Assembly: GCF_006345805.1 (NCBI RefSeq)
Contig: NC_043011.1
Location: forward strand, 24,006,464-24,070,463
Direction: 5' to 3'
DNA: 64,000 bases
DNA from: Octopus sinensis
Taxonomy: Eukaryota
The notes under the pieces are model-generated. The model ran no database searches. It saw only the letters and a program-made list of their open reading frames with translations, and was not told the origin of the DNA. Positions within the stretch are counted from its first letter, which is position 1. The number at the start of each line of letters is the position of its first letter. Position numbers and translations under genes: made by a program. This document shows positions 5,334 to 52,046 of this stretch, one piece after another.

Positions 5334-5366
<33 letters not shown>

Positions 5367-5367
5367 A

Positions 5368-5405
<38 letters not shown>

Positions 5406-18254: not shown

Positions 18255-18422
18255 TCACAATGGGTTCAGGTCTGGATCTGACTTGTATGGTAAATGGTCC
18301 AAGGGAAATGCATCTCCGTCCATGTAGACATACGGAGGGGCGCTAGGCTCAGCGCGATGGTACGTCCTTCCATTGTCTAAGCGGGATTGTCTTGAAGACT
18401 CTTGGAATGTCCCAAGGAAACG
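18255..18422 (-). CDS. SLC6-like exon 14 (cytoplasmic C-tail, ends DPDLNPL*)
   Basis: Acceptor CCTGTATTTCAG, phase 0; 55 codons plus TGA; GC-richer and hydrophilic. Confidence 0.82.
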   Translation of the reverse strand, partial: RFLGTFQESSRQSRLDNGRTYHRAEPSAPPYVYMDGDAFPLDHLPYKSDPDLNPL

Positions 18423-21400
18423 CTGAAATACAGGAACATAAATAAATATACATACATGTATGTATAATAACAAGATACTTAAATAACATAATCTATTGCA
18501 ACATTTGAATATAACAAACATTTAACACTTTGTTCCTCTGAATTTATATAGAGATTATATCTTGATGAAGCTTAAATTAAACAACAATTAATTGCTTATA
18601 ACAAAGGGGTGTTGAAAAGTTCCTGGCATTAAGGGAATTGCAAAGTTCTTTCACAGGGTCTAGAAAAACTGAAAGACTGTTGCAATAAGTGTGTAAATCT
18701 GAGAGAAGAATATGGTGAATAAAATGATAGTTAACTGATCCTCTTGTACTTTCTTTTACCCAAAGCCAACAACTTTTCAGCACCCCTTCATACGTTTCAA
18801 AAGTACATTATATACAACATGTAAAGATATATGCATCTTCTGCATAAATGGTATTCCTCAATGCAAAACCAACTTTTTGGGTTGACGTTCATATAACAAT
18901 GAAGTCTGACAAAATTTTCAGGTGTGTAATGCTCCCAGAATGTGGGGATACCTGTAGTCAATTTGAAAATGTATCTATCCAGTTTTTATGATGGACATAA
19001 ATTATTTGCTTTCATCATTATATTTCATTATGATAACTGTTATATTACATAATGTTATGTCTTCAAAATGGGTAGATTCAAGCAAGCGAAGTAAATTGCT
19101 TTTTGACATAGTTCAATAAATAATTCACGTTTGCCCTTTCATTAGCCTTATGTCTATTGATAACTTTAGAAAAAAATATCTCATAGCTACCTTACTCAGT
19201 TTGCTACTTTTTTTTCTTCAGATAAACTAAAAATTAGAATTTTGTGATGGAAATTGTCATTGTATAAATTTTACATGATACCAACCATAGAAACCATTGT
19301 AGTTTGATCAAATAAAGTATTTTACATTTATTGTTCTTTATGCAAACATAGTTGGAATGCCTACACAATAGCAACTCTTTTTATACATGAATACAACCCA
19401 ATTGTTCTGAAACCTACTTGTCAACTAGTCAAATTGAAGAGTAAGAAGAGGTTCATGCTTTGATCAAGGGTGTATTAGCAAGATCTGAACTCAAAGACCA
19501 CCAGGATAGTAATATAGTCCCAGAACTTTAACCCCTATAGACATTATGTCTCATAAATAATACAAATAAAACTAATAGTAATGATTTTATTTCCCCAGAT
19601 ACAAAGTCTCGCATTTATAAAAATAAAGATTTAGAGTAACTACTCTTTCCAAAAGGAATTAATGGAAAGAAATCATCTTGAAACAAAAACAATTCATAGT
19701 TTTCAGGAGCTGATTAATATCAAATTACAACACCACATCACTTAAAGGCAGTAAATTATTTTGTAATCAGTGACAATTTAGTAAATGGGATTACTATAAT
19801 CTGAATGGAACTAACTAATATATTTCTGGAATTTATAATTTTTTCTTGTTTGTTGACCACGATATCAAGGAAAAAAAAAGTGACACCTAACAGAATTTGA
19901 TAGTTGATCTACGAAGCACATTAAATATAAATACTGTAAAATAAACATTGTAACTTCATAGAAAATGAAGATAAAGGATCACACACTCAATTATTGCTAA
20001 CTATTGTATCTGATTTCTGGCTTTCAAACAGGGAAATATTTGAAAAGTAGTTAAAAAATTCCCCTGTAATATCAATTAAAATAATCTTTTATTAAATCAA
20101 TTTTTGAGCAAAAGAAAATCCAATTTAAAATGATATTACTTACTATTACCTATTAGAAATTTGAATGCAAAATTATATACTATGGACAATACATTTTTTA
20201 ATTAATTCCATTTTAGATTGGTTCTCTTTTATTCAAACATTGATTATTTTTCTTTTGATGATTTAATAAAATACTACTTTAGATGGTATCATAGCAGAGT
20301 TCTGAAACTGTTTTTCAAATACACACAAACACACAAATATTGATGTGTGGATAAGAAGTTTGCTTCACAACCTTGTAATTCCAGGTTCGGGCTACACCTT
20401 CAACAAATGCCTTAAGTTGAACAATACTTGCGAATATAAGTTTGGTAGATAGAAACAGTGAAATGGCTGTGTGTGTGTGTGAGAGAGAGTATGTGTATGC
20501 AGAGTGTGTAAGCATGTGCCTATGTGTACACATGCTCACATGTGTAAGTGTATACCCATGTGTGCAAGTGTGTGTTTATGTGTTTGACACACCAGCTCTG
20601 GTTAAAAAGTAACTTGGTCACTCAGTAAATATAGATTGATGGAATAAATACTACTGGGTTTTGATAAGATTAACTAAATTATTCAGAGGTGATTTCCAGG
20701 CATTACTACAGTGCAATGAGCGAACTCAGGAAGAATATAAAAAAGTAAGAGATATGTACCTGACAACAGGGACCACGTCCTACCATAATAGCATGAATGG
20801 CTCCAACAAGTACGAACACAAATGGTACACCAGATACAATCCATGAAATAGTTTCCCAAGTTTCAGAGTATACACTGCCTTTGTAATTCAGTTCGTCTTG
20901 GCCATGAACAAATTTATAAACCCAAATACCCTGAAGAAAAAGAAACAACAGAACAAAGGTGAATCATTATCAATAACTAAATTATGTTTAAGAAATCTAC
21001 TTTGTAAGGACAAACAACCACAGAATTGAAAATTACATTTTAATTATAACAATAATGGTTTTTGATAAAAGTACAAGGTCACACACTTTGGGGAAAGAGA
21101 TTACAGTTAATTGCAATCCATTCCCCCACACCCACATGCTCCATCATTTAAAATATTTCCAATTTTATTGAATCAGGAAAGAAGAGAGGCAAAGACAACC
21201 TAAGTGGGATGTGAAACCAGAGCAGTAAGTCAAGTCTGTCTTTGTGTCTCCTAATAGCAAGTATAATAACTGTGCTATATACAATCTAAAATCTCACAAG
21301 AAATTTAAGGTCTCCTCCATGAGAGCCCTCAATCCCACCCAAAAAATAAAAATTTGTAGTAGGACTCCTCAATTACTTTATGGAAGATTGACAAAGCATG

Positions 21401-22302
21401 TAGATGTAGGCTTGTTTATAATCTGAACTGACTTCAAATATATTTAAAGAGATGTATATAACAAAGCAAAATGATACTCAATGTATGTATTGCCAGTAAT
21501 TATTTTATTTATCCTGTGGGGTTGACAGACATTGCAGACACATAGAATTTGAGGTTAAAATCCAAATATAGAAAGAAAGGAAAAAAAAAACCCTCCAAGA
21601 CATTTTGTTTGATGTTAAAAGACATGCAAGTATTCATAGATAGCTGTGATTTTACTGAGCTTGACATGTCTTCTCAAAATGCACTTTATGCTGGTGCCAT
21701 GTAAATGCATCCATGTCAGTGCCACATAGCACTCAGCACACTCTGTAAAGTCAGAAGCAAGGGAAACAACTGCGGAATTCTTTAAAAAATTATTGATGAT
21801 GGTGCGGGTATGCATTGAAACCATGCCAAAACAAACAATTGGAGCTGGAGCAGTTCTCCAGCAGGCCAGTCATACCATCCAACCCATGCCAGAATGGAAA
21901 ACGGACGCTAAACGATGATGATGATGATGTTCTGATTTATGTTTTTTTCTTGTAAAAAATTTAAGCAATGTAAATTATTAATTTCTAACATCAGCAGAAG
22001 GCCACAAAGTTTTGAGGAGGATAAATTTTAGCTAAAACAGCTCCAGCAACTTGACCGGTACTTTTATTTTTATCGATTATATGATAAAAGTTGATATTGG
22101 CAAGATTTAAACTCAGAACTCTAAGGGGAATAATTAATCACTGTAAGGATTCTCTATCTTCATCATCATCATTTAACGTCCGTGTGCCATGATGTATGTG
22201 TGTGTATGTGTGTATGTGTATGTGTGTGTATGTGTGTGTGTGTGTGCCATGATGTATGTATGTATGTGTGTGTGTGTGTCTGTGTGTATGTATGTATGTA
22301 TG

Positions 22303-22342
<40 letters not shown>

Positions 22343-25300
22343 CTGTGTGGCTAAGTTTACTTCTCAACAGCAACAACAAAACCTCAATACATACATAATT
22401 TAATGAATAAATCGGATAGTGGAAAGTTTTAATAACAAATGCACACAATTCAAACACTCCACTTTAACGAAATTTCAGACATAAATATAAGTTATCTCCC
22501 TTGTACATAAAAACGGTTCCGATTGCATTTTTTTTTATGGTCTAAGCACCGATTTTTTTTTCCATAACACAGACGGATTTTAAAATTTTTTGTAAATTTG
22601 CACTTGATTCTATTTTTTCTTCTTTACAAAATGTAATTTTCGCTTATATTAATTTTTGACTTACGACAGATAATCATAGTTACTATTGACCCCACCAATA
22701 TAAGGAAGCACGGCCAATAACTAGTTTTCAACTGAAAAGAATAAAATTGAGTAAAGCAGAGTAGTGTACCTTCCAGCATTTTGGTTAGGAAACAGATATA
22801 GTACACGAAAGCGAATCAATAAAATTTTTCTGATCGCACGAAGCGCAGGGAAAAGAAAGGTAAGTTATATTTGTATCATGACAAGGGAAATGTTCCTATC
22901 ATATCCAATATAATGTTTTCCTCATACACTTTAGTGAAAAGCACACTCGTTATAAACAGAGAAACAGGCAAACGTTGATAATAGTCAGAAGCAAGGGAAA
23001 CAACTGCGGAATTCTTTTTAAAATTATTGATGATGGTGCGGGTATGCATTGAGAGACGAGCATTGTATATGCTGGTGTATGTGATGCTCTGTTTTTATAC
23101 TTAAATGTAACAAAAATTGTAATGCGTCTTATGCGACTGTATTATGGATCGCATACTAAATGCATGGGTGTACGATGAAACATGTCAAATTTGATCTCCC
23201 ACAAAATATACCTTTTTCTCCAGCCCCAAAAAGCAGAGGTTCGTCTTCTGTGAGATTGTGTCTTATACACTAGGAAATATAAGTAATCTTCGCTAAGTAT
23301 AGTGAAAACTCCAGACATGAACACTTCAGAGAAGCACAGATTTACTCATATTTTCCAGACCTCAGAACAACTGGAAGAATAGGGCTCTTTTCTTTCTTTT
23401 TTCTCTTTTGGTAAACTGAAGAGACGAATCGAAAGTGACAGATGAAAATCTGCCATGCAAAAGTGCTTTCATACAGCAGATATTATATCTTCTGCATGAA
23501 GGAAACATTTCTACCGATTTTGAATTTCAGAATTGATTCCTTGGCTTTTGACCAAATTTATCTTCAGCACTTGATTTTTTTTTTTCATTTCATTGCAAAT
23601 ATGGCATTAAATTCATTAAAACTTCTTTAGTCTTGTTTCATTAAGTCGCCACCCCTCATACTTAAGTATGTATAATGCTGCAGACAATAGCAATCAAATT
23701 CAGCAAGAAGCACATGCATAGTGTGCAACATCTTGTCTATGTGTGCTTGTAAGGTGAATTTGAAAGACAAGTAATTAGGTATTGAATAAATTGATTATTG
23801 TAAAATAGACATGTAATGCACAAGGGTGACATGGTGGAGGAAAGTGATTGTGTAGTGAAAAGTGAAACTCTTAGAGAAATGTACTGAATTTATATAGGTA
23901 TATCTTGAATCTATAGAGTACAGAAAAATATATAAGCATGAAAGATTTAAGATTCACTCACAGCAGTTGCCAAACAGGACAGGGCAAACCAAACACCCAT
24001 CATGATGCGTTCAGCTAATGAAAAGTTCTGCTTTGCTGTATAGAAAGAAAGAAAGCAACAAATATAATTTGTAGAACATTAATAATTAACTTCATTATTT
24101 ACTTATATACACCTTAATTTACTTATATAACACCTTAGTAAAATTGTGAAAGTATAATATTAGGTGTGAGATCTCTAGTTTGTTGAAGTGGAATTATGAG
24201 AAGCTGTGTTTATGCCTCTTGCCTATTCTAGTAGCAAAATTGGTATGATTGTGAATTCAGTTCACCAAAACGTTGTTACTTTATGCTTTACGTCATAGAC
24301 AGAAAATATAATGGGAGGAATGTATTACCATGTAAGAATTATATCAAAATTTCAAATTCATTTATAGCTTTTATAAATAACAACATTACAGCTTAATTAT
24401 GAGAATTATTATTAATATTAACAAATGTAAAACTTACTCATTTCAGTATTTTTGTTTTCTGAACCCCCTCTCATATTGCATTGTATCAAATTATTTGGTG
24501 CACTTTTCAAAGAACTTGCATTAGATTAAGTGGGTTTTTTTTTTATTAAAGTTCTACGAAATATATTTTTTTCACATTAATAAATGAACAAGTTGTCAAA
24601 CTTATGCTTCACTTTGACACTTCAGGAACTGAATGTTTTTACATGTTTGTACAGCTGTAATAGTCTTAGTAGTCCTGAAGACATCTACCTCATTTATGTA
24701 GAAAGTAAACAAAATAACCATGACTAAAGTGTTTGTAAGTCAGCGTACAGAGGAAATATAATTTTATAATATACAATTGAAAATATCTCTGTGAATTGCT
24801 ATGACTTACCATAGACCACAATAAGTCCAATAAAAGTGAGGACTACCACCAAGAATACCAGCCGCTCCAATGACACAGTCATTAGGGTATTGAAGTAGGG
24901 TCCAGCCTAAACATCAAACAAAGAAAACATTATAAAATTAAATATCAACAACATAATTGTTAATTACTTTTTAAGAGAAAAATATTGAAAGTAAGTTGAA
25001 AGAATGTTGAATAAAAAATTTTTTAAATCATTTAGTTTTTTTGTTTTAGTGTTATAAATTCCAACAATAACACAAAGAAAAGCCAAGTAATACATCAATA
25101 GCTGCATTTAAGTCATGAAATTACTCAAGCTTCTAAGATAAATTAAGGCAGTTAATATGAGATGTATAACTATACTGAAAAAATTTAAAGAATTACTAAC
25201 AAAATTATTTTGACGTCCCCCAGGCCATTTAACAAATTCTTTTACTAGACAATCATTGCAAGTTTTAACAAACATCCAAACTATAATGAACTCTCCAAAC

Positions 25301-27797
25301 TAATTAATAACAGCAATTCCACATTCCACATATTTGATATATCTATAAATTACAAAATCCATGAATGTTCCAATGTTTGTAGCAACTTGATAGAAGTGTA
25401 CTTCACATAATACCACATGTATTTCATTATTCCTTATGTCTCTAATGATACTTTCCGAATGACTTGTGTACTTGATATTATCTTCTATTCATATCTGGGA
25501 GAGGAATGATAAATTAATTTTAAATTAATAGTTTCAAAATAATAAAATTAAATAAAGTCTAGTGTGCTGCTTGTCCTGTTGCATTTAATAATAATGATAA
25601 TTTCTAACTTAGTCCACATTATTTTGTGTGCATATGTACAGGAAACAGGCTATAGATGATTAAATCAATCCCAATACTAGGTAGGCACTTATTTTATCAA
25701 TCACAAAAGAATGAAAATCAAGTAATACTCACATTTGTGGTGTGTGGAACTCCCAAAGCATTGATAACACCAACAACAAGAAAAGTGACAACAACATTGA
25801 TGAATGTCTTATTGATGGAATTTCTCTCCAAGCATGGTATCAGTGATTCCATAATGTTGTCCACCAAAGTCAGAATAGCTACACACTGAAACAAAAACAA
25901 CACAAGAAATAATACCAAGCAATTTGAAAAAAAAAAAAAAAAAAAAAAAAAGAAAAACTTTCTTAGAACAGTAAATAAAATTTCTTAATTTGAACAAAGC
26001 ACTAAAGGATACTGGAAGTAAATTATTTTCAATGTTTTTAGATTATGGGAACCTATGCAGGCTTGTGGTTAAAAAGTTTGCTTTCACAATCACTTGGTTC
26101 TAAGTTTGAAATCACTGAGTGGTAGCCAGGAGAAGTGTTTTTTCTAAAGCCTTGTGTGTGAGAGTTTGAAGCTCTTTGAATACTTGTGTTTGTATGTATG
26201 TATGCCTCTATCTGTCTCTACAGAGGATGATAGAATCACTAGTTCATTATCAAACAAAATATCTTGTAGCAGTTATGTCCCTTTATATCCAAGTTAACTT
26301 TGTCTTCCAGTTTTCCAGAGTTGATAAAATATATAAAAGACAAAGTAATGGAGGAAGATGTAATCCACCAAAACCATTGAAGGTGGTGCCTCTGCATAGC
26401 CAAGGTCCAATGACTGGACCCAGTAAAAGAATATAAGAAAGGTATAAACCCATTTGGATTAGATACACAAACCATTTTTTTGTGAAATGATGTAGTTAGT
26501 TAAACTGGATCCAAGAAAATTTGCACCCAGGGAAATTTGAACTTAAAAAAGTGGTTTAAAATGAAATTATAAATTTTAACACTTTAACCCTTTTGTTACT
26601 GTATTTCTGTTAAGATGCTCTGTGTTTCTTTCAATTACTTTAAATACAACAAAGAATTTAGTAAAATAACCTAGTTATCATTCAGCTAGTGTTAGGAACA
26701 TAAATTGTGATTAAGGTTTGGTGGAAGATTTTAATTCAAAACTTATGGAAACAAGACATTTGTACTACAGAGCCAGAGGCGGTTTCAGCTGAGTTGGTAT
26801 CAAAAGAGCTAATAATCTGAACTGACAAAAAGTTTTTAAAATGTAGTCACCAAGTAAGTTTTGTAGATATCTTGAAATAAGATTCATCATTTAACATCTG
26901 TCTTCCATGTTGGTACAGGTTGGATAGTTTGTCAGGAGCCGGCCAGGTAGAAGATTACACCAGGCAACTTTGTTTTGACATGGTTTTTATAGCTGAATGC
27001 CCTTCCTAACACCAACCACCCTGTAGAATGGACTGAGTGCTTTTTATGTGGCACCAGCATAGGTGAGGTCAGTTTTGGCATGGTTTTTACAGTTGGAAGC
27101 CCTTCCAAATGCCAACCACTTCAAAGTGTTGAAAAAAAACAAAAAAGCCATGCAGATATGGGTGTGTGGTTAAGAAGTTTGATTCTCAATCACATGGTCT
27201 TCGGCTCATTCCTACTGAGTGGCACCAGATTGACTGAAGCCTTGTGAATGGATTTAATAGACAAACTCCAAGAAGCTAATGTGTGTGTGTGTGTGTGTTT
27301 GGTTGTGTCTCCTTGTCTTAATAGTGTGACAGTCATAAACGAGCATCATAATCATACAAGCTGTTTCATTCATTTCCAATATTCTACAAGGAGAGGTGAC
27401 CAGAAGAGAATCTGGCTACAGAAAATCTGTTTCAATAAACACTGTCTGATCCATGAAAGCATGAAAAAGTGGACGTTGAAACAATGATGATGGTAGAGTC
27501 AAAGACTTGTAAAAAGTCAGTGATTCAACTGTGTTATAAACTTTCTGATTTCAATGTAGATGTGAGAAAGAGAGAGTGGAGAATGTTTGTGAGAAATTAC
27601 ATAAATGGAGTTGGTGAGGGTAATGTTTTGAATGGCCTGAGGTTTGTTGTTTAGCAAAGAGGTTATCAAGATGTTATCTAAGTAAGTATTTTATTACCTT
27701 TATGAATAGGTTGAGGAAATGAATACTTTTTCTGTTAATGAGATGTGATTTATCTTAAACTGTTGCTGAAGTGTTTTAACAGTTACAAATTCAACTG

Positions 27798-27837
<40 letters not shown>

Positions 27838-28056
27838 CTCCAACAATGTGAGGACATGGAACAAGTATAGTGTTATTGGACGCTCAGGAAAAGAAAGAAA
27901 GAAAGAGGATTTAACGTTTCGAGTGGAGCTCTTTGTCAGAAATATAGAAAAAAAAGGAAAAGTCCAAGGAAGGGAAGACGGAGAATGAAAATCGCCAATG
28001 ATACACATGCGTTCACATATTGAAAATATACATATGTATATATATATATATACATA

Positions 28057-28088
<32 letters not shown>

Positions 28089-31000
28089 CATACATATAAA
28101 TACATATATATACATACATACATACATACATATAAATACATATACATATATATACACATACATATACATATATATACACATACATATATATACACATACA
28201 TATATATACACATACATATACATATACATACATATATATACACATACATATATATACATATACATACATATATATACACATACATACATATATATACACA
28301 TACATATATATACATATACATACATATATATATATGTGTTTGCTCATTGTGCTAACATTACATTAGTAAGAGCAAAGTATATACAATGTATATAGTTTGA
28401 TTGTACTTGTATACCATTTTATTTATTATGCTTACTCTCTGCTCTTTCCCCAGATTTTGTTATAAACTACTACAAATTTTTGTTATTTCCTCAATGACCT
28501 TTGACCACTCCTTACTGATCTCAATTTTCTCAGTAAGCTTCCTATATCACCCCTTTCCCATTCTTTCCCCTTTTGTTCATGTGTGCAGCAGTGCCACTAT
28601 GTGCATATCCTTTTGCCTTTCTGTTTCCTTTCGTATGCATTCTTTAATACTATCTTCCACCTTATTTGACCCGGCTCTCTCAATTGCCAGCTCATTTCTC
28701 TTGACCTCTATCTTGCTCAACCCCTCTGTCATACTGCTCTCATTCTGTACCTCCTACCAGATAATTCCCCTTCCACACTACTTACATTGGCTCTCCTATT
28801 ATAATTATCCTTTTGTTGCCTTTTTCATTCTCAATTGTGGCCAAAACAATAACACTTCTATACTCTCTCCTTCTGGAACAAGGACAAGTGCTTTAAACAG
28901 TAGTTTCTGTCACTCTCCACTATATATAATCATACTGAATTCTACAAGCTCTTTATGTATTTGCATGGGTTATATTTTGCCATTTCAGATATGATTATAT
29001 AAGAGATATTTGCCCAATGACACTGTATTCTGTTGTTTATTAATCTTTCTAAATGCTATAATTATATCAAAGTGGCTTTAATGAAAAATCATATCTATTA
29101 AAGTAAATATTACAATAAACAAAGAGATCTTATTCTATTCTTTCAAGTCATAGATCAAATAAACGAGTCAAACTCTAGAGCCTCTATGAGGCTGCCTGAT
29201 GTGTGAGAAATAGTAGCCAAATCTCCCTCTAATTCCACCCTATCGTACAAGACAAAGTAATCCAAGATAAACAAAAAAGATGGAATAACTACAACTAGAA
29301 TGTTTCTGATCATAATCTGCTGGATCAGGTTTGATCTGGTGTAAAACAATAAAAATACAGTAATACCTCACTTTACGAGGACCCGCTTTGCGAGACCCTG
29401 GGTTTATGAGTTTTACTTTTTGAGCACAAGATCCAAATTTTGAATGAAGTGAAAAAGTTTCTACTGCCATAACAAATGCTTCTGCGTGTTACCGAGAAAT
29501 TTATAGAGAGTGAAAAAAAAGGCTTCTTCTAAATAAATAACTCTAGACTTGTTTTTTAAAAAAGAAATCTACAAGTCCATCTGTGAGTGCTTCTGAATTG
29601 GCAATTGCTTCTATAAGTGATGGTGTGCTCAAGTCTAGTGCCAGTGAGAGTGATTAAGAAAACAATTATAATAATAATATTTTTTTATAATAAATGATCT
29701 TGACATTCTTTTTAATTTACATAAAATCTTTACATTCCACTGTTGTTTTATCACCATTTAGTTACGAGTATTATAAATTTTACTGGTAAAATATTTTTTG
29801 GGAATAAATTATGGTTTATAACATTGCTACTATGGGAAATTATTGCTCTGCTTTATGAGTTTTCACTTTATGAGTGGTCACTGAGGACAAATCAACTTGT
29901 ATATTGGGGCATTACTGTACATTAATTTTTTAAGACAAGCAAAACAACTGGAATATGTCTGTGTGTAGAAATTGGCTTACCAGAAATAAAACATGATATA
30001 AGAAGATGGAGAGGTAGAATAACAAGGCATATGCAGGTGGGATGCGCAAATAGCTGAAGGCTGTAGCCATGGTATCAAAAATGAGAGGATAACCTGTAAT
30101 TAGGAAAGAAAATATATTAGTTATGAAAATTTGAAATGAACTTTACTTCTGATAAAATTAAAACATTAAGTGAGCGACTTAAGGTCTTGAGATGATAGTT
30201 TTAATCAAACAAATATTGAAGTGTAGAATGATCAAATTAAGAACAAATTTATGATCTAATTTAATGATAATGAATTTAATAATATTAGACTATTGTAGGA
30301 GAAATTTTTATAAATTGAAGCCTGACTAACATCAGAACAATTTATTTATACAATGATAATAATGTAGTAACTAAAGGGACAAATAGCATAGTTTGTCTAC
30401 AAGTGGTTCTCAACCAGGGTTCACATCAGATTTTTGGGGATCCACACAACAAAATAGTAAACTAGGGATCCACAATAGTATTTTAAGGGCCCCTCAAAAA
30501 ATTTTTTTACAGAGTTCAACTTACACAAGACAATGCAGAGAAAAACATTAATAAATAATATTCTATAAAACTAGTTTTTAAACATCAAATGATTATGGGG
30601 GGTCAATCAGAGTAAAATAATAATAAAAGGGGGTCCATAGATAAAAAATAACGGTTGAGAACCTCTAGAAAAGAGAAACTAGTGGAAATTGAAGGGAAAA
30701 AAAGGTATAGAACAAAAATAAAAATAGAACATAGTGAATATGTAAAGAGTGAATATTTAAGTACTTGTATTAATGATGAAAAAAAGGCAATTCAACATGT
30801 GAGATAAAGAATTGAGTTCTCAACAAAGACTGTATAAGCTAGTTCGGGGTTGATTAGATCTCAATAATATAAGTTTAGCAGAAAAGCTGCGATATCATCA
30901 AGATGATTACAAAGATACAGGAAGTAGTTAGGTTGAAATAGGAATTATTTGTATCTTGAAAACAGTTTCCCAGAAAATGTTGAAGATTGGAGAAAAGGAT

Positions 31001-32495
31001 AACTTTATATTGATTCAGTTCCACTTAAGTAATATCGTTTTTCTCAATTTTTTTTTTCTATAGATGAATGCCTTAAGAATGAGATAGAACCAGAAAGGTT
31101 TTTGGTTTTTTTTTTGTTAGTTAAAAGGACTATAGGAAATCAAAAAAACATCCAATACAACAGCAAGTCAAACATTAGCTGACACAAGTTATACAGGATA
31201 TAAGATTTGTCACATATTCAATTAGAGGCTAAAAAGTTAATTGATAATAAAATGCCTTTTGTATTGATAAGAGATAATTAGCTGTATCTTCAAGAAATTA
31301 AGAATATGGTACAGATGTTGGAAGTTAGACAACCTGGAAGTAATACTGAATATAAAAATGTATGCTGATAGAGGCTGGTTTAAAGTATAATACCTAATAT
31401 TTTATACAAAACAGCTGTCTAAATGTTTTACTAATCAAATTATACATATATAAAAACTGACAAGAAATAATACTAAGAAATGTTTTAGATAAAAGAAAAT
31501 ATTACACACCACTAAGAGGAACATCACTAAGTATTGCTTGAGATTTTTGTATTAGATTGCCAAGATAGGGTGCCATAGTTAATGTAGGCAGCATCCAGAA
31601 GACACCATACATCAGTATCATTAATAACCATGTTCTATAATATAAAAAGAACAAGTACAAAAAGATATTAGTACAGATGATAAAATATTGAAGGATCATA
31701 GTTACAATTATCAAAGAATTTAAACATATTAAAATAGCTTATTCCAAAATTATATATATTTGTAATGTCAGGTTTCACAATATAAAATATCTGAATGCCA
31801 TAACTTAGAAAAATAAAAAGGAAAAAGAAAAAAAGCAACAACAAAAAAATGGAGATTTAAATATTTAGTTACTCTCTGAAATAAAATTCAGATAATTCCA
31901 ATATATTTGTCACATTTTTCTAAAAAAAATTTTTACGGAAAAGTTTTTTTTTTCCCCTAATCATTTAAAAGTTGTGATTGGTCATCTACATTTGATATGT
32001 GAAAAACACTAGTAGCTGGAAAACTTTAAAGTTCTACTTAATAACTGCTATTTTTAAGTATAATTATGAAATTAAAATTTTTAAAAAATAATTTTTAGAA
32101 CATTAAAATAAAGACACACATGTGTGTGTGTAAGAAGATATATCTGAAAAAAAATTAAATTTATGTTGGCATATGGATAATTAAATTGTATAATTTTTAG
32201 TTTATTGGTACATTTTAATTTTCAAAATGGCTAATACTTTTTTTATGTATTTTAGCCCAATTCTTTATTTCTTTTTAATTGAGAGACAAATTTTTAATTA
32301 AATGTTTATATTAATGATATAAATTATAAATGTTGAAGACAAAAAAAATCATTGACAGAATGGCTTCAAATATATAAAAAAAGGAAATATTTGATGCTGT
32401 TTTTCAATAACAAAGAAAAAAAGATCAAAAAGTAATCTTGATTTTCTTTCTTTAATAAAGAAAATACCAACTTGGTTTCGAGTGTTTTATGTGTA

Positions 32496-32530
<35 letters not shown>

Positions 32531-41500: not shown

Positions 41501-44467
41501 ATCTGCTTAGATATTGAAAATAGTTAGACTGTGAGACTGAAAATGATGAAAGGGGAAAAAGAACCACAGCAAACAAATTGATTAAAGATGAAAAGATCAG
41601 CTTTATGTTTTACAACAACAACATGAAAAAAAAAAATTACTATTATTACTCTAACCAGAACTTATATATTAACACATAAAAGGGGAAAGAGCAGCACTAG
41701 TATCAGATATTCTATTTGATGCTAATATATGAAGTGGCAATTTATTACAGCAAAATTACCTTATTGGATGAATAATTAAGCCTGTAAATCACTTTCTCCA
41801 GAAATTGTGAGAAACTAATACTGTTCATATGATTGATGACTTCTTATCAGATGTAGGAGTGAAGAAATATAACTGTCATACAAATGAGGAAAATATTTAT
41901 CTCAATAACAAAGTAGGTAGAGTAATGAAGTAGTTATAATTAAAAAGGTACTAACCCAACCAAAGACACGTCCGCCAAGTGCTACCATCAATAGTACCAG
42001 GAGCCAAACTGATGCAGATGCAATAGGCAACATAGGTACAGTCATCCGACTGACTGTTTCTGTGAATCTCCAATGCGGGAATCCATGAACATGATCAATA
42101 CCATCAGTAATCTGCCAGAATTCAAACCTGGGTAAAAAAAAAAAATACTTAGAAACATGTTGCTTTACTGAAATAAATATATTCATTTTTTTTTTAAAAA
42201 CTTAATCCACACAGCCACAAATTCATAGCACATTGAGAATATGACAGTCATTCTTTTCTCAAAGGCATCACTGGTATGTTTGAAATAAGTTTGAATAAGA
42301 GAATTGAAACCAGTATGTGCTGCCAGCTCAATGGAAGATTACATTTAAATCTTTTTTTTTTTTACAAGAGAAGCAGAGTAGTACTCATAACCTTGTGATG
42401 CCTTCCTGAACTGGTAAGACTGAACTGCAGATATGCAAATTAGGCATTTAGTGCAGTCTTGTCAAATGCTTTTAACAGAATGAACTATATTAAAGGCTCT
42501 CAAGGACCAGGTGATGTGTTAAACTGAGCAGCATACTTGGACTACTTTCCCCTCAACCTCCAAAATAAAATGACTAAAGAAGAACAAAATCAATTAAAAA
42601 ATACCAGGAAATAGATATATATCTATGTAAAATATTTTCATTATACATTTACAAAAAGTAGTAACTGACTTCAAAGTCGTTATGATTATTTTTATGCAAA
42701 AAGTATAATAAATATGTGTTCTACAAAAGGTACTGAATAATTCCTCAGTTTAATGTTAAATTGTTTTTATTATAACTCAACATAAAAAGAAGCGTTAATA
42801 AAATATTTTCTCAATAAAGGAATAAAGCTTATGAGGAATGTATCAAACCTATGTTCAGAAATTGGCAATCAACTCTGTTGGTTACTCACTGAGAAAGATG
42901 TAATAAACAAGCACACTGCTAATTACATTAAACTAGACTCATAATTTAATGAAGTAAATTATAGAAAAGGAAGTGAAATTATACAATTATGAAGAAAATA
43001 ACATAACTGCTGGTGAAATAAAAAAGCTAAAAAAAATTAAAATAAATACAGTTAATATAATATAGAAAATATAAAAGAGTTAAAGAAATAATACTAACGT
43101 ATAGAATTCATATGCTGATCTCTTTGTCATTTCTGGCAAACCAGTTATAGAACTGCAACAAATTGAAAAATAGGTCACAAAAATACCTCTATTTCAATAT
43201 AAGTAGTAGGGAAGACAGAAAAAAGTAACACAATGTTCATTATCAAATATTGATTTCTTTTAACACTGTTGTTTATGGCACCTTTCATCTGATGAAATCA
43301 CTAATCAACCTGTAGCAGAATTATTGTAGTGCTCTAATTAGGATATGCTGGTAGGGGATAAGAGAATATCATTAGTAATGTAGTTGTAAGAAGGTTAAAA
43401 AAAAATTAAAAAATCGTGTCATCACTTTTGTGATAATATTTGGCCAACATAATTTTCTTTTTTTGTGCAGCCTTCAAAATTCCAATGACCTACAAACAAC
43501 ACACATCTAAGAGCCACGATGTAATTAAGAATTACTATGTAATTCCTGCTTTGATCCAACAGCTCAATCAATGGAACTGCTATATTATTGTGCAAGTAGC
43601 TGAGTAACCCCAAAACACATGCATCCTTAACGTAATTCTCAGGCACACTTAGTGTGACATTGTGATGAAGCTAACCTTTTGAATTACAGCTCTAGTTCAT
43701 CCAATGAGCTTCCACACAGTTTTTGCTAAACTAATTTCACTCAAGAATATATAGTAGAAAATACTTGCTAGAAATGTTATCACAGTGAGGTTGAAACTAA
43801 ACCCTTCTCCCATGACTGAGAAGTGAAATTCTTAACCATCCATTCATGCCTGTTGCTATATAAAATAATACTTAAGAGTTCCGTTATAAAATAAAGCATA
43901 CACATAAGGAAATCTTACCTTACAACACCTGGAGAACAGTAATTTGTATTCCATGAATTGTCACAAGTTCCCCATAAATATGGCTGCTGAGCTACAGATA
44001 TGAACATATAACTTGCCACCTCTGCTACGACAGGACCTTGGTATATACAAATTAACATTAAATGCACTAATGCTGCAATGCCTACACCTGCAGAAATAAA
44101 CAAAAACAAAAAAAATAAGAAACATTTGTATAAAAAGTGAAGCATCAAATTTCACAAAAAACTATTTTGGTATTGATTAAACAATATATATATATATATA
44201 TATATATCAAAATAAACAACAAGAATAACTTCGGTAATTTGGTACGATCGTTTCACGCTACATCATTTTATTAAATATTGTGTATATATATATATATGTT
44301 TTATTATTCTCAAACAAGAATATTGTGACAGTGATTTAAAAGTTTCTGGACTGCCTGGTGATGGCTTAGCAGGCCAAAACATTGAAGTCACTGTCAACAA
44401 CATTCTTGTTTAGTCCATCAGGTTAATATAAAATTGTTTTTATTACAACTGAACGTAAAAACAAACA

Positions 44468-44508
<41 letters not shown>

Positions 44509-45175: not shown

Positions 45176-45222
<47 letters not shown>

Positions 45223-45841: not shown

Positions 45842-45880
<39 letters not shown>

Positions 45881-45889
45881 CATACACAC

Positions 45890-45925
<36 letters not shown>

Positions 45926-48918: not shown

Positions 48919-48954
<36 letters not shown>

Positions 48955-49555
48955 AAAGAGGGAGAAAAACAACAAATTAAATAAAAGATAATTAAAAATT
49001 TTACAAGAAAACAGAACACACACAATATTCAAACTTGAAATTTGTTTAATTATATTTTACCTGTGAAAAAAAACTTCATTGAAGAAAACCTATTTTTTTT
49101 TGTGTTTAAAAAGCCAGTCTCAAATTAAAAAAGAAAATGGAAGTTTATAAGTATATTAATATTTCTTACTTCTTCATTTCAAATACAAAACTCTTGATGT
49201 TAAAATAAATTCAGAATAACATTTTGTTGATAAAGGAAAATGGTAAAGTCAGTCGAATTAATCTATTACATGACTGGTATTTATTTCATCACTATTAGAA
49301 GAGGAAAGACAACTTATGGGACTAAGTATCTTAGTCTTTCATACTTTTACTTGTTTCAGTAATTTTGACTGTGGCCATACTGGAGCACCACCTTTTAGTT
49401 GAAGAAGTCGCCTGGACTTATTCTTTGTAAACCTGGTACTTATTCTATCAGTCTCTTTTGCTGAACTGCCAAGTTACAGGGACATAAACACACCAACATT
49501 AGTTGTCAGGTGATGGTGGGGGAACAAACACACAAATATACATACATATATATAT

Positions 49556-49602
<47 letters not shown>

Positions 49603-52046
49603 ATATATATAATATATATATATATATGACGGGCTTCTTTCAGTTTTTGTCAACCAAATCCACTCACAAGGCTTTGATCGGCCTGAGGTTATAGTAGAAG
49701 ACACTTGCCCATGCAGTGGAATGTGGTTGGGAAGCAAGCTTTTTACCAAGCAAGCTTTTTCCTTATTATTTATGATCTGTTAATGATTCTCTCAAATGTT
49801 GGCACAAGGCCAGTAATTTCGAAGTGGGATGAGTTAGTTACATTGTCCCTAGTATTTAACTGGTACTTTATTTTATCAACCCTGAAAGGAGGAAAGGCAA
49901 AGCTGACCTTGGCAAGACTTGAGCTCAGAACATGAAGAGCTGGAAGAAATGTTGCTAAGCATTTTGTCTGAAATGTTAATGATTGTGCCAGCTTGTTACC
50001 TCAAACTGTTGATAATGATAATTATTAATAAGCTTACCTTTCCATATAGGAAAATAGGTTGAGAGCATTCCCACAATTCCTTTTTGTAAGTGTCCCCCTA
50101 ATTTCAGCTGTAGAAACAAGGGGGGAATACAAAGCACTGATAAAAATATGAAATGAATTATCACTGACAAATCTGAAATGGAAAAGAAAAATAATTTAAG
50201 ATATAATCACTAACAGATTGTCAATTAATTTGATTACAATAAAACAGAACACATTACACAAAATTATTTATATTACTAGTGATTTCATAAAGTCAACTTT
50301 TTTTGAGGATTTAACTAACTCTAGTATATTATTAGTAAAAGTTTTATTGATCCTGAACAAAATTAGAGAAAGATAACCTATCAAGGCCCAGTAGAACACT
50401 GACATATCAGTTGTCAGCTGTTTACAATCTACTACTTTTTGCAGGAGCCACTATTCACTCAACTTGCTAGAAATAGGGAACAAATTTCTCTTTAAAAAAA
50501 GAAAAGGTAAGACAAAGATAATATATTTCCAGATACATTGTGACTGATAAAAAGACAAGAATGGTTACAGTTGGAATGCCATTCCATTAATGACAGTTGG
50601 ATCTTGTTATGATCTTAGGATCAAGAATAACTCAAAATCTATAAAGGATATGTAAAATGACATCCTCACAAAGAAGACTATTTATGTTGTATTAATGTGT
50701 TAATGATGTTACTATTCTTTTCTCATTAAGGACAGTCCTCATTAAATTTTAAGCAAATGGCAAACTAAGGAAAATAGCTTGAATTACCAAGAATCTCTTA
50801 CGTTCAGTGTTGATACATCAGAAAGAACAAGAAAGGGAAGGTCAATTTAAATTTAAAAAAAAAAGAAACAAAATTGTTAAAGGAATCCAAAAATTTTATT
50901 ATATATAGTCTTTTGCTGGTTTTAGTCACTGAGTACCATTTTACCACCTTTAGTTAAAGCAACTCCAGTACTTATACAGTCCGTCTCTTTTTGCTGAATC
51001 ACTAAGTTAAGGGATCATAAACACTCAAACATCAGTTGTCAAGCAGCAAGAGACATGCACAGACACCCGATGGACTTCCATACAGTTTCCATCCAGCAAA
51101 TTTATTTACAAGGCATTGGACTCAAGGCTATAACAGAAAATGGTATAGTTCCAAGATGCTACACAATGGGACTAAACTTGAGTATATCTTTCGCATGTAT
51201 TTTCATGGTTGAATAATTCTGCAAATCCAGATATTTGCAATTATTACTGGACTGGTTTACATGTAGGTACTCTCATTAATGTTAACATCCTAAACGGGGA
51301 GAGGGGAGAGAAGGGAAGAGTGATAATTTTGTCATGGTCTATATAGACTGATACATTCAGATTAATGTGAGGATCATAAGACAGCATGTTGTAGGACTGA
51401 CTAACAATTCTAATGCTTGGCACTACAATTTAATATGGAGATACAATCCATCAAATCTTCATCATTGTCACCTCACCCTACCCTCCAACTAGGGTGGCTA
51501 TATACTTTCTCAACTGCAAGACACCTGTTTCTGTCTCCTTCAGCTCATACTCTATCCTCTCATCACATAGTACAAAGTACCTGCCTTACTATTACTCCCC
51601 ACTCAGTTGAGGGGTCCCATCTTGCAAGTTACTTGAGGACTTCACTGCTGCTGGTGCCATGTAAAAAGCACCCAGTTCACTCTGTAAAGTGTTTGGCGTT
51701 AGGAAGGGCATCCAGCCATAGAAACCATGCCAAAGCCAGCAATAGAGCTTAATACAGTCTTCTGACTTGCCAGCTCCTGTCAAACAATCCAACCCATGCC
51801 AGCATGGAAGAAGGACATTAAATTATGCTGACAAAGATATACATTTGTTAATTTAGCCCTAAAAAAGGAGGAAAAAAGAAACCATGCAAAAAGTTTTCAA
51901 GATGATTTAAAGACATTTTATAAATTTTAGATCACCTGGTACATACCTTTATGTATGTGAAGGAATGAAAGATGAATAGGAAAAATTGAGAGTAATGTGA
52001 ACTCTACCAAATTCCATTGTGGTTTATATGTTTCTCCATCAGCCAT
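18255..52046 (-). CDS. Divergent SLC6 (neurotransmitter:sodium symporter family) protein, 14 coding exons, 599 aa: join complement(51947-52046,50038-50172,43919-44087,43099-43152,41956-42127,37985-38146,34986-35092,31510-31634,29981-30093,25733-25885,24810-24906,23962-24035,20760-20930,18255-18422)
   Basis: Exon lengths 100+135+169+54+172+162+107+125+113+153+97+74+171+168 = 1800 nt. All introns are GT-AG, phases match at each junction, and there is no internal stop. SLC6-like segments recognised by eye: TM2 '[19 protein letters not shown]', EL2 '[13 protein letters not shown]', 'SAYEFY', 'QITDGIDH', TM12 '[10 protein letters not shown]'. The 125-nt and 113-nt TM7/TM8 exons match typical SLC6 exon sizes. 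Confidence 0.9.
18602..18790. mobile_element. Second copy of the mariner-derived MITE, in the last SLC6 intron
   Basis: Same TIRs and internal sequence (AATAAGTGTGT.AATCTGAGAG) as 13253-13447, more decayed. Confidence 0.7.
20760..20930 (-). CDS. SLC6-like exon 13 (EL6 plus TM12)
   Basis: Acceptor TTTTCTTCAG, donor CAG|GTACAT; '[17 protein letters not shown]' resembles 'LTYxxYxYPxWxxxIGW'. Confidence 0.92.
23962..24035 (-). CDS. SLC6-like exon 12 (short IL5 plus TM11: [24 protein letters not shown])
   Basis: Strong acceptor TTTCTTTCTTTCTATACAG, donor GCT|GTGAGT; 74 nt, phase 1-0, bridges exons 11 and 13. Confidence 0.82.
24810..24906 (-). CDS. SLC6-like exon 11 (TM10: [32 protein letters not shown])
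   Basis: Acceptor GATGTTTAG, donor TATG|GTAAGT; 97 nt, phase 0-1; resembles 'GGxY...VYG'. Confidence 0.88.
25733..25885 (-). CDS. SLC6-like exon 10 (end of TM8 plus TM9)
   Basis: Acceptor TTTTTGTTTCAG, donor AAT|GTGAGT; 153 nt, phase 0-0; ends 'LGVPHTTN', like SLC6 'LGLPxxTx'. Confidence 0.9.
27909..27943 (-). ncRNA. Compact hammerhead-like motif with a zero-loop stem III, one core substitution
   Basis: Minus strand: ATTT-CTGACAA-A-GAG ctcca CTC-GAAAC-GTT-AAAT; CTGACGA->CTGACAA fits CpG decay. Confidence 0.55.
28025..28336. repeat. Compound (TA/CA)n microsatellite; representative of dozens in the window (e.g. 347-484, 879-1092, 3718-4145, 5056-5480, 8426-8935)
   Basis: Direct reading; these tracts account for the Y/I/C/V/M-rich ORFs in the track. 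Confidence 0.95.
29358..29917. mobile_element. pogo/Tigger-like MITE (560 bp)
   Basis: TA|CAGTAATACCTCACTTTACGAG ... CTTGTATATTGGGGCATTACTG|TA terminal inverted repeats. Confidence 0.7.
29981..30093 (-). CDS. SLC6-like exon 9 (EL4b plus TM8: [37 protein letters not shown])
   Basis: Acceptor TTTCCTAATTACAG, donor CTG|GTAAGC; 113 nt, phase 1-0; aligns with 'PGLAFIAYPEA..LP.SPLWS.LFF'. Confidence 0.9.
30400..30668. mobile_element. hAT/Charlie-like MITE relic
   Basis: CAAGTGGTTCTCAACC ... GGTTGAGAACCTCTAG inverted termini; no clear TSD. Confidence 0.5.
31510..31634 (-). CDS. SLC6-like exon 8 (TM7 plus EL4, ends ..SDVPLS-G)
   Basis: Acceptor TTTTTATATTATAG; 125 nt, phase 2-1; donor G|GTGTGT is required to match the phase of exon 9. 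Confidence 0.85.
34986..35092 (-). CDS. SLC6-like exon 7 (TM6: [35 protein letters not shown])
   Basis: Acceptor TTTTTTTTCCAG, donor GT|GTAAGT; 107 nt, phase 0-2 as in typical TM6 exons. Confidence 0.85.
35400..37320 (-). mobile_element. 5'-truncated LINE (L1/Tx1-like), RT plus C-terminal zinc-binding region, pseudogenised
   Basis: Frameshifted ORFs contain '[12 protein letters not shown]', '[19 protein letters not shown]', 'LAYAD', 'GAKINLDK', '[14 protein letters not shown]' and 'SCPRCEQ'. Confidence 0.88.
37985..38146 (-). CDS. SLC6-like exon 6 (TM5 plus EL3)
   Basis: Acceptor TTCTTTACTTTCAG, donor ACA|GTAAGT; 162 nt open, phase 0-0; hydrophobic [20 protein letters not shown]. Confidence 0.85.
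41956..42127 (-). CDS. SLC6-like exon 5 (end of EL2 plus TM4)
   Basis: Acceptor TTTTACCCAG, donor TGG|GTTAGT; '[16 protein letters not shown]' resembles 'LQISDGIEHIGGLRW'. Confidence 0.9.
43099..43152 (-). CDS. SLC6-like exon 4 (EL2: [17 protein letters not shown])
   Basis: Acceptor TTTGTTGCAG, donor AC|GTTAGT; 54 nt, phase 2-2; 'SAYEFY' corresponds to SLC6 'PAEEFW/Y'. Confidence 0.82.
43919..44087 (-). CDS. SLC6-like exon 3 (TM3 plus EL2 disulfide loop)
   Basis: Acceptor TTTATTTCTGCAG, donor AAG|GTAAGA; encodes GVGIAALV...[14 protein letters not shown]. Confidence 0.93.
44506..44736. mobile_element. Tc1/mariner-derived MITE (231 bp)
   Basis: TA|CAGGGTTGGCCAAAAGTCACCTGA ... TCAGGTGACTTATGGTCAACCCTG. 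Confidence 0.8.
45468..45842 (+). mobile_element. Non-autonomous Helitron-like element, copy D (same 3' end as A-C, different 5' half)
   Basis: 5' TCTATATAAA; 3' CCTGAGCAACGCCGGGCGATACTGCTAG|T; sits between (TA)n tracts. Confidence 0.72.
46225..46625 (-). mobile_element. RTE-clade LINE fragment (post-RT region)
   Basis: '[67 protein letters not shown]' is a typical RTE thumb region. Confidence 0.88.
50038..50172 (-). CDS. SLC6-like exon 2 (TM2: [44 protein letters not shown])
   Basis: Acceptor TTTTCCATTTCAG, donor AAG|GTAAGC; 135 nt, phase 1-1; clear similarity to 'GIPLFFLELxLGQ...PxFKG'. Confidence 0.9.
51947..52046 (-). CDS. SLC6-like exon 1 ([33 protein letters not shown]), degenerate TM1
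   Basis: ATG at 52046 with an in-frame TAA 8 codons upstream. 'W..vEF.L.sI' aligns with SLC6 'W..klDFLLS.IG'. Donor AAAG|GTATGT, phase 1, matches exon 2. Confidence 0.72.

Follow-up and report, generated by a model that had tools for sequence, protein, structure and literature searches.

The SLC6/NSS family is the textbook model of ion-coupled secondary transport and a major drug target, and all SLC6/NSS proteins characterised so far are, to our knowledge, Na+-coupled transporters. The gene analyzed in this study lies in a stretch of 64,000 nucleotides from Octopus sinensis (RefSeq assembly GCF_006345805.1, contig NC_043011.1, positions 24,006,464 to 24,070,463), hereafter the window, in which it occupies the minus strand (52046..18255). 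It encodes a protein of 599 amino acid (aa) residues that is an SLC6 descendant by fold, profile and gene structure, and in which the residues that coordinate Na+ and Cl- in canonical members have been lost. The first-pass annotation, made from the letters alone, had described it as an SLC6-fold protein with its ion- and substrate-binding motifs erased.

With the canonical transporters (dDAT, hDAT, NET, SERT, GlyT, GAT1, TauT, BGT1 and B0AT1), the octopus protein shares membership of the SNF family, the predicted LeuT fold, the Cys-x8-Cys pair of the second extracellular loop (EL2), the 'P..KG' motif of the first intracellular loop (IL1), a 'GG.Y'-type motif in transmembrane segment 10 (TM10), the hinge residues, and the positions and phases of 10-12 of the 13 introns. 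It differs from them in that TM1 is devoid of GLGNxWRFPY..NGGG, and in that the N-terminus ahead of TM1 is ∼10 residues long and without the gate Arg. Moreover, in the octopus protein and its relatives the equivalent of LeuT E62 is Gln, that of Y108 is Gln or variable, that of Q250 is His or variable and that of N286 is Tyr or Phe; the equivalent of E290/Ser is Trp, Cys or Ser, that of T354/Asp is Leu or Met, that of S355 is Phe, and that of T254 is Ala in cephalopods.

Atypical members have also been described within the SLC6 family. The Drosophila proteins blot and bedraggled have developmental or cytoskeletal phenotypes, and we know of no demonstrated substrate for either. Blot (bloated tubules) is a member of the SLC6 family with a described phenotype (PMC3029318). 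The resemblance of the octopus protein to blot and bedraggled is a functional analogy at most. Among the proteins of the APC/LeuT-fold superfamily, yeast Ssy1 and the SLC38A9-type transceptors are transporter-fold sensors. The likeness to these would be that a transporter fold is kept under selection while its role has moved from flux to signalling via cytoplasmic regions. They belong to different families, keep their own ligand pocket and have long cytoplasmic N-terminal signalling extensions, whereas the octopus protein has a minimal N-terminus and unconserved pocket columns, and its candidate outputs are IL1, IL5 and a short C-terminal tail.

Residues at the ion- and substrate-binding positions

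The functional positions were located by two alignments. Sixteen mollusc orthologues were aligned with 12 canonical SLC6 proteins by hhalign (probability 99.9%, E 2e-34), which covered TM2-TM12, and 41 sequences were independently aligned by MAFFT. In the searches and the modelling, the window protein was represented by a proxy, the octopus transcript product P0001, which is identical to it at 590 of the 599 positions (98.5%); all nine differences are conservative, and the motifs are equal except for V311I in the TM7 motif. The assignment of positions to Na1, Na2, Cl- and substrate followed LeuT and GAT1 (PMC8310414, with the LeuT literature). The two methods gave the same columns, pairing FYYN with IYQG, QIFYSLG with HIQMALP, N..TS with YG.FW and LGIDS with YHVLF, and in both alignments the canonical sequences carried the expected residues in the mapped columns. 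The following replacements were found in the octopus protein (S1 is the central substrate site):

LeuT E62 equivalent (conserved Glu of TM2): Gln55; 'ELALGQ' reads 'QLKLGG', with Lys57
LeuT Y108 equivalent (TM3, S1): Gln95
TM6 'QIF(F/Y)SLG' (S1, Na1, Cl-): 'HIQMALP', namely H272, Q274, M275, A276 and P278
TM7 'N..TS' (Na1 Asn, Cl- Ser): Y309 ... W313
TM8 'LG(L/I)DS' (Na2): Y374-H-V-L377-F378
TM10 gate Asp (extracellular gate): Thr440

The strings quoted in the first-pass annotation were located at residues 21-34 (the TM1 string), 93-95 (IYQ), 272-278 (HIQMALP), 309-313 (YGVFW) and 375-379 (HVLFL). Its claim that the motifs of TM1, TM3, TM6, TM7 and TM8 had been replaced agrees with hhalign and MAFFT for TM3-TM8; with regard to TM1 it was slightly understated, since this segment is also ∼10 residues shorter. 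The side chains of Na1 (LeuT N27, T254 and N286) are lost: the N286 equivalent is Tyr309 (Tyr or Phe in the orthogroup), the T254 equivalent is Ala276 in cephalopods and Ser or Thr in most other molluscs, and the N27 column holds Ser27, the alignment being uncertain there. The Na2 site (LeuT T354/S355, which in eukaryotes is Asp-Ser) is lost as well: its two positions hold Leu377, with Met instead in other molluscs, and an invariant Phe378. The residues of the Cl- site (GAT1 Y86, Q291, S295 and S331) are replaced by His40, His272, Ala276 and Trp313. The TM1 signature G-x-x-x-G-L-G-N-x-W-R-F-P-Y...N-G-G-G is absent from the octopus protein. TM1 was not alignable by profile methods; the conserved Trp is separated from the start of TM2 by 23 residues, compared with 33 in the canonical proteins, and the missing 8-10 residues were placed by MAFFT at the end of TM1b and in EL1 (the 'YLCYKNGG' region).

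The first-pass annotation had allowed for Na-site residues that compensate for the loss; no polar or acidic residue able to do so was found in the aligned columns of the sites. Those of Na2 are hydrophobic, and K57 and K289 are invariant in the orthogroup. Judged from these columns, Na+/Cl- coupling through the canonical sites is effectively excluded. In KAAT1, K102 of TM2 interacts with D338 of TM7 at Na1 (PMC8310414). K57 was considered as the counterpart of this lysine and was rejected, because its position, two residues past the equivalent of LeuT E62, is some four helical turns away from the Cl-/Na1 level of TM2.

As shown by the column entropies of the 16 orthologues (mean 1.38), the most conserved segments are IL5 (0.51) and IL1 (0.92), followed by TM5, TM8, TM2, TM4 and TM7. 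Zero entropy was observed at Q55, K57, P278, W280 and F378; position 377 had an entropy of 0.54 (Met or Leu), and position 309 is Tyr or Phe. The equivalents of the S1 wall at positions 91, 95, 272 and 275 fell within the 71st-89th percentile of variability. In the 12 canonical transporters, which represent varied substrates and phyla, columns 95, 272, 276, 309, 313, 377 and 378 were at or below the 22nd percentile, and columns 91 and 275 were moderately variable there too. By this pattern of conservation, the old site chemistry is not simply relaxed but is replaced by a conserved, largely hydrophobic or aromatic set, with the rest of the pocket apparently unconstrained.

The C-terminal tail (aa 569-599) carries the motif E-P-[S/T]-A-P-P-Y, followed by Y-x-Y-[M/I]-[D/E] and [F/Y]-P-[L/M]-D, from cephalopods to bivalves, and within it P570 and A572-P574 are invariant. 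P(T/S)AP motifs are bound by the UEV domain of TSG101, as in the cellular proteins HRS and ARRDC1, and YxxPhi motifs act as sorting signals for AP-2. The tail motifs may be endosomal sorting signals, including signals for the endosomal sorting complexes required for transport (ESCRT), and are given here as a lead rather than a finding. Reading the 'APPY' of the tail as a Nedd4-type PPxY motif was rejected, as the spacing is wrong, whereas P-[ST]-A-P suits the TSG101-UEV ligand class.

Family membership, gene structure and expression

A match to Pfam SNF (PF00209), the check proposed in the first-pass annotation, was obtained, weakly, at 65.8 bits against a cutoff of 27; it spans aa 38-529 and profile positions 41-515 of 524, with TM1 unmatched. 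When solved structures were searched by sequence, only SLC6 transporters were returned (E 1e-9 with the single sequence and 2e-19 with the family profile). An AlphaFold2 (AF2) model based on a multiple sequence alignment (MSA) of nine sequences, all of the family, had a mean local confidence (pLDDT) of 42 and was discarded. With an MSA of 41 sequences, a pLDDT of 86.5 and a predicted TM-score (pTM) of 0.89 were obtained, and disorder was predicted at residues 1-5 and 551-599 only. In the model, TM1 is short and broken (13-19 / 22-29) and TM6 is unwound (259-276 / 283-291). Its top 50 Foldseek matches were all eukaryotic SLC6 proteins (dDAT, hDAT, NET, GlyT2, SERT, TauT and GAT1), with target-normalised TM-scores of 0.74-0.84 and sequence identities of 15-20%, and outward-open states ranked highest. 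According to this model the product is a membrane protein with 12 TM segments and the SLC6/NSS fold. The C-x8-C of EL2 is retained (C120 and C129), as had been noted at first pass; C129 is invariant, and C120 is present in at least 90% of the 16 orthologues.

The coding region was mapped with a relative of 599 aa as a guide, and exact splice consensus was demanded. Fourteen coding exons were found, from the ATG at 52046 to the final stop-codon base at 18255, giving a coding sequence (CDS) of 1800 nt (599 aa) with zero internal stops; all introns are GT...AG with a polypyrimidine tract. The SLC6-like reading frames of the 18-52 kb interval lie on the minus strand. The first-pass annotation was correct in its coordinates, exon count, protein length and quoted peptides. 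The features of the gene are as follows:

62789..62908, minus strand: possible upstream non-coding 5' exon, uncertain; matches nt 95-222 of transcript L001 at 80% identity, with no GT donor at the aligned edge
52047..52189, minus strand: 5' untranslated region (UTR) of the first coding exon; acceptor TTACAG/G at ∼52189; 96% identity to transcript L001
51947..52046, minus strand: exon 1, aa 1-34; very short N-terminus and shortened, degenerate TM1 (W11-K33); GT donor
50038..50172, minus strand: exon 2, aa 34-79; TM2 with invariant Q55-L-K57-L-G59 (canonical E-L-A-L-G-Q) and IL1 'FPIWKG'
43919..44087, minus strand: exon 3, aa 79-135; TM3 with I93-Y94-Q95 (the LeuT Y108 equivalent being Gln) and EL2 C120-x8-C129
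43099..43152, minus strand: exon 4, aa 135-153; EL2
41956..42127, minus strand: exon 5, aa 153-210; EL2 'GFPHWRF' and TM4
37985..38146, minus strand: exon 6, aa 211-264; TM5 and EL3
34986..35092, minus strand: exon 7, aa 265-300; TM6, with P278, W280, T286, G288 and K289 invariant in the mollusc orthogroup
31510..31634, minus strand: exon 8, aa 300-342; TM7 'YGVFW' (Na1 Asn to Tyr309, Cl- Ser to Trp313) and the invariant 'MAPY'
29981..30093, minus strand: exon 9, aa 342-379; EL4 and TM8 'YHVLF' (Na2 Asp/Ser to Leu377/Phe378)
25733..25885, minus strand: exon 10, aa 380-430; end of TM8 (invariant D388-N389) and TM9
24810..24906, minus strand: exon 11, aa 431-463; TM10, with Thr440 as the gate Asp equivalent
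23962..24035, minus strand: exon 12, aa 463-487; IL5 (the most conserved segment of the family) and start of TM11
20760..20930, minus strand: exon 13, aa 488-544; TM11, EL6 and TM12
18255..18422, minus strand: exon 14, aa 545-599 and stop; cytoplasmic tail, predicted to be disordered, with conserved motifs
18109..18254, minus strand: 3' UTR, at least this far; 89% identity to transcript L001 down to ∼18109

No AATAAA signal was found for the 3' UTR. The match at 62789-62908 may be a diverged non-coding first exon, so that the gene would span 44.8 kb or more, or else it has arisen by chance or from a repeat.

The orthologues of a limpet (Patella) and a clam (Mya) also have 14 exons, with the intron phases 1,1,2,2,0,0,2,1,0,0,1,0,0 of the octopus gene; ten of the introns lie in the same alignment column, and the rest fall in gapped regions. 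When the octopus gene was compared with two canonical genes, the GlyT1-like gene of a hemichordate and the GAT2-like gene of a fish, ten of the 13 introns (1, 2, 4-7 and 9-12) matched both in column and phase. Two more matched one gene each (intron 8 the fish gene, intron 13 the hemichordate gene), and intron 3 is offset in the gapped EL2; the SLC6 intron phases reported at first pass are therefore confirmed. Since these positions and phases are shared, the gene descends vertically from an ancestral SLC6 gene. Intron 1 (phase 1) occupies the same place as the canonical SLC6 intron at the TM1/TM2 boundary and thus anchors the register there.

The proxy protein P0001 comes from a 2.3-kb contig (L001) of run SRR3401912, an octopus meta-transcriptome (PMC11662614). 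All 14 exons are matched collinearly by this mRNA contig, with block edges at the predicted junctions, and it reaches into both UTRs. A second protein (P0002), 87% identical and also 599 aa long, was found on contigs of 2.4-3.1 kb in 66 runs, one of which is a Sepia pharaonis whole-animal transcriptome (PMC5541922); as to tissue origin, two run accessions were traced, namely the octopus metatranscriptome and the whole Sepia pharaonis animal. That octopus and cuttlefish mRNA contigs give one and the same spliced ORF of 599 codons is well outside what chance would produce. The dN/dS ratio was 0.045-0.06 against the octopus transcript (dS 0.11-0.15) and 0.05-0.09 against cuttlefish (dS ∼1.2, saturated), and zero indels separate octopus and cuttlefish across the 599 codons. 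The odd TM1 is itself conserved (dN 0.057, octopus versus cuttlefish). The gene is thus real, spliced, expressed and strongly constrained. With an intact frame, a dN/dS of ∼0.05 and spliced mRNAs in two species, a pseudogene is essentially excluded. The selection on the fold suggested at first pass agrees with this ratio, with the absence of octopus-cuttlefish indels and with the confident AF2 model matching solved SLC6 structures; a lack of expression or orthologues, or a dN/dS near 1, was not what we found.

An in-frame stop precedes the ATG by 7 codons in the octopus transcript L001 and by 2 codons in the cuttlefish transcript, and the window frame upstream of the ATG (TYSHHFS/M) also starts right after a stop. 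In a fuzzy six-frame search of the whole 64-kb window, no canonical TM1, TM2, TM6 or TM8 motif was found; the sole exception was 'LFLVSQF', which results from read-through past the exon 9 donor and is not an exon. Based on the upstream stops and the absence of a canonical motif from the window, a hidden first exon restoring a canonical TM1, which the first-pass annotation had raised, is excluded.

As to RNA editing, A>G (16) and T>C (19) changes from genome to transcript were both raised, without a strand-specific signal, in a comparison that is one between species. In exons 10-12 (25885-23962; TM9-TM11, IL4-IL5), the octopus-cuttlefish dS was 0.27-0.53 and the nucleotide identity 86-92%, compared with saturated dS and 74-83% identity in the remaining CDS (transcripts L002-L009). 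The low dS suggests extra constraint on the RNA or DNA, e.g., an RNA structure, editing-site complementarity or a splicing enhancer.

Repeats were observed in the introns and downstream of the gene. Intron 6 (35400-37400, minus strand) contains a GC-rich island (42% versus ∼31% nearby) with decayed reverse-transcriptase-like open reading frames (ORFs) whose matches to Pfam RVT_1 and zf-RVT are weak and below threshold, a retroelement fragment within the gene. In intron 2 (46176-46736, minus strand), an ORF of 186 aa resembles a retroelement fragment by eye and has no Pfam match. A 310-bp imperfect (ATATAC)n microsatellite in intron 9 (28026-28335) gives rise to long spurious ORFs on both strands. 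Downstream of the gene, a fragment of a Tc1/mariner-type transposase helix-turn-helix (Pfam HTH_Tnp_Tc3_2, 59 bits) lies at 11408-11689 on the minus strand. The same ORF start occurs in two copies ∼1.3 kb apart on the plus strand (3517-3897 and 4855-5367); both run into long AT/ATAC microsatellites, with (ATAC/TA)n arrays at 3717-4148 and 5055-5492, which suggests that a repeat unit has been duplicated locally in tandem. Beside them, at 2098-2772 on the minus strand, is an ORF of 224 aa with no Pfam match.

Relatives of the gene in Spiralia

An exhaustive profile search of 1.84 billion representative proteins gave 586 matches at E<=1e-3, which fell into tiers by score. The matches above 370 bits form the mollusc orthogroup. 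In the tier of ∼116-270 bits, part of which was looked up, full-length members mostly align from profile position 1-6, the atypical N-terminal region included; some matches are unnamed, and the named proteins looked up were all spiralian. They come from a chiton, from abalone, clam, oyster and whelk (as paralogues), from the nemertean Lineus, the brachiopod Lingula and the annelids Owenia and Capitella, and from Macrostomum, monogenean and trematode flatworms. The tier at or below ∼107 bits contains canonical proteins, bee ine and a centipede transporter among them, whose alignment mostly starts at TM2. No arthropod protein was found among the named relatives looked up above ∼110 bits. Two profile queries for homologues returned the same 24 mollusc orthologues and no arthropod, vertebrate or canonical sequences. 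By a census of named proteins, orthologues occur in many bivalves and gastropods. Their automatic names conflict, including ine-like, GAT2-like, GlyT1, TauT-like, betaine, proline and B0AT1-like.

In a bootstrapped neighbor-joining (NJ) tree, a rough distance tree rather than a maximum likelihood tree, 26 atypical spiralian proteins grouped together at 94% and the mollusc orthogroup, including the chiton, at 92%; the branching within the mollusc orthogroup follows the species tree. The whole clade, which spans five phyla, is without the Na1, Na2 and Cl- residues. The paralogous spiralian clade is represented by Haliotis XP_046562757, Magallana XP_065925569, Mya XP_052773213, Lineus XP_064630502, Lingula XP_013378684, Owenia CAH1792508 and Macrostomum PAA89003. 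Like the octopus protein, these paralogues have the change of Glu to Q55, K/R57, the motifs 'LPT.G' and 'APY', and the loss of the Na1, Na2 and Cl- residues; their automatic names are inconsistent, and the group has no characterised member. Unlike the octopus protein, with which they are 21-28% identical, they have a TM1 of near-canonical length, e.g., 'GFSGMTSIPYYIHRHTGLF', and they do not have the mollusc-orthogroup invariants P278 and F378 or the E-P-[ST]-A-P-P-Y tail. In the canonical-length TM1 of the Haliotis, Mya, Magallana and Lineus proteins (P0017, P0023, P0025 and P0018), only the Pro-Tyr of 'RFPY' survives, and the C-terminal end of Haliotis_B is a true PPxY-type motif. This sister clade looks like an evolutionary intermediate between canonical SLC6 and the mollusc short-TM1 form.

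The paralogues have the near-canonical TM1 length, and the chiton has the short TM1. Specific to cephalopods are the losses of the TM6 Ser (Ala276), the TM7 Ser (Trp313), the TM10 gate Asp (Thr/Ile440) and the TM2 Tyr (His40). In the order that we infer, the sites would have been lost in an early spiralian, TM1 would then have been shortened in the mollusc ancestor, and the additional losses would have followed in cephalopods. The first-pass annotation had proposed that the gene might be specific to the cephalopod lineage. This did not hold, as the same 14-exon orthologue exists in gastropods and bivalves, an orthologue is present in a chiton, and the wider clade lacking the sites extends to annelids, nemerteans, brachiopods and flatworms. 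Because the orthologues extend beyond cephalopods, the link it drew to the repurposing of neuronal receptors for chemosensation in cephalopods has no basis here. The proteins constitute an old, apparently undescribed spiralian family rather than a cephalopod invention; no prior description of the clade was found in the open-access literature searched, which does not prove its absence from the literature.

Internal duplications or truncations are present in several annotated orthologues (P0186 and P0188 of Mytilus coruscus, P0194 of Nucella, P0011 and P0004) and are probably errors of gene models or assembly. The Mytilus models have a repeated TM10 block, and P0011 has a foreign insert in place of EL2-TM4.

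Possible modes of action

The first-pass annotation had left the choice between a Na-independent carrier, a receptor-like sensor and a scaffold. As far as the sequences can tell, their conservation speaks, if anything, against a substrate site that is conserved. Given that the pocket columns are unconserved, that bulky invariant residues occupy the ion and substrate sites and that the extracellular gate has lost a part, we favour a pseudotransporter that is non-transporting, or at least not ion-coupled, and that acts via its cytoplasmic face, to which we give somewhat less than an even chance. In such a protein, ion-coupled symport would have been lost, and a conserved small substrate would most likely not be carried through the canonical S1. 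The former ion and substrate core would be filled by Pro278 and Trp280 in the unwound TM6, Leu/Met377 and Phe378 in TM8 and Tyr/Phe309 in TM7, and the other walls of the pocket would be free to vary. Constraint would be focused on TM2/4/5/7/8, on the cytoplasmic IL1 and IL5 and on the short motifs of the cytoplasmic tail. The LeuT fold would serve as a scaffold, possibly one that still changes conformation, and the output would be protein-protein interaction or sorting at the cytoplasmic face (as a regulator, sensor or trafficking partner) rather than solute flux.

Several points weigh against this pseudotransporter. Na+-independent LeuT-fold carriers exist in the APC superfamily, and loss of the Na sites alone need not abolish transport. 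The unwound TM6, the hinge Gly and Pro residues (P50, G59, P75, G79 and G432) and the strong TM conservation over >500 My would also fit a carrier that still cycles. The filling of the core is deduced from which columns changed and not from a cavity volume, and the variable 'S1' columns might not line the pocket after the TM1 deletion. The MSA behind the AF2 model held canonical SLC6 sequences, so that the model is biased to the canonical fold and is not independent. Moreover, the TM6 Ser/Thr and the TM10 gate Asp are still present in the majority of bivalve and gastropod orthologues; the cephalopod protein is therefore the most derived and may not represent the family.

Another reading is a carrier independent of Na+ and Cl- (a uniporter, an exchanger or an H+-coupled transporter), which would run the rocking-bundle cycle with a remodelled site and possibly with K57 (TM2) or K289 (after TM6b) as a built-in cation; we consider this a serious candidate, although its probability is appreciably below even. 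ApcT, CaiT and the LAT/BasC carriers of the APC superfamily transport without Na+. The full 12-TM fold is predicted, with TM1 and TM6 broken, and P50, G59, P75, G79, G432, W194 and Y462 are invariant or nearly so in all 41 sequences. The TM segments are under strong purifying selection, including the odd TM1 (dN 0.057); K57 and K289 are invariant in the orthogroup, with K/R57 in most of the wider clade, and the acidic residue of the intracellular gate is kept as E/D392 in most members. However, the S1-lining columns are among the most variable within a single orthogroup, which is unexpected if a specific substrate is bound there, and the Na2 positions hold an invariant Phe and Met/Leu, with no basic residue. 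Two positions of the unwound TM6 that are small (mostly Gly) in canonical members are now Pro and Trp, and ∼10 residues of TM1b/EL1, a moving part of the extracellular gate, are gone together with the gate Arg. It is very improbable that the protein is an ordinary Na+/Cl--dependent SLC6 transporter whose site loss is only apparent, owing to misalignment, a mispredicted first exon or compensating residues elsewhere. The TM1 alignment is indeed uncertain (hhalign begins at TM2), and with HMMER alone the TM8 motif could be aligned only by way of a gap of four residues, but two alignment methods concur at every TM2-TM10 site and the shared introns anchor the register, the TM1/TM2 boundary included. 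In-frame stops lie 2-7 codons upstream of the ATG in transcripts of two species, the window lacks a canonical TM1, TM2 or TM6 motif in all six frames, the same N-terminus is found in other mollusc orthologues, and the SNF score is just 66 bits. Having lost all catalytic-type residues, the protein superficially looks as if constraint had been relaxed, as in a decaying or recently inactivated SLC6 pseudogene or a fast-evolving cephalopod-specific duplicate with a frame left open by chance. This explanation is practically negligible in view of a dN/dS of ∼0.05 with no indels in 599 codons at a dS of ∼1.2, spliced mRNA in two species and 66 runs, an identical exon structure in the gastropod and bivalve orthologues, a clade in five phyla and the invariance of the replaced positions themselves.

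A more specific form of the pseudotransporter can be stated, although we think it rather unlikely in full detail. The clade would consist of spiralian SLC6-fold pseudotransporters >500 My old, in which the cavity is permanently filled by W280, F378, M/L377 and Y/F309 and TM1b is truncated; the protein would be a non-transporting module that is read out via its cytoplasmic loops and whose P(S/T)AP-plus-YxxPhi tail routes itself or its partners through the endosomal/ESCRT pathway.

The clade has been under strong purifying selection since before the split of molluscs, annelids, brachiopods, nemerteans and flatworms, yet it has lost all of the coordinating residues and, in molluscs, a portion of TM1 too, and it is therefore a natural experiment on the LeuT fold without ion coupling. 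The annotation labels (GABA, glycine, taurine, betaine, proline and B0AT) would mislead inventories of neurotransmitter systems in molluscs, annelids and parasitic flatworms. If the pseudotransporter just described is real, an NSS-family protein would, for the first time, clearly have been turned to a role other than transport.

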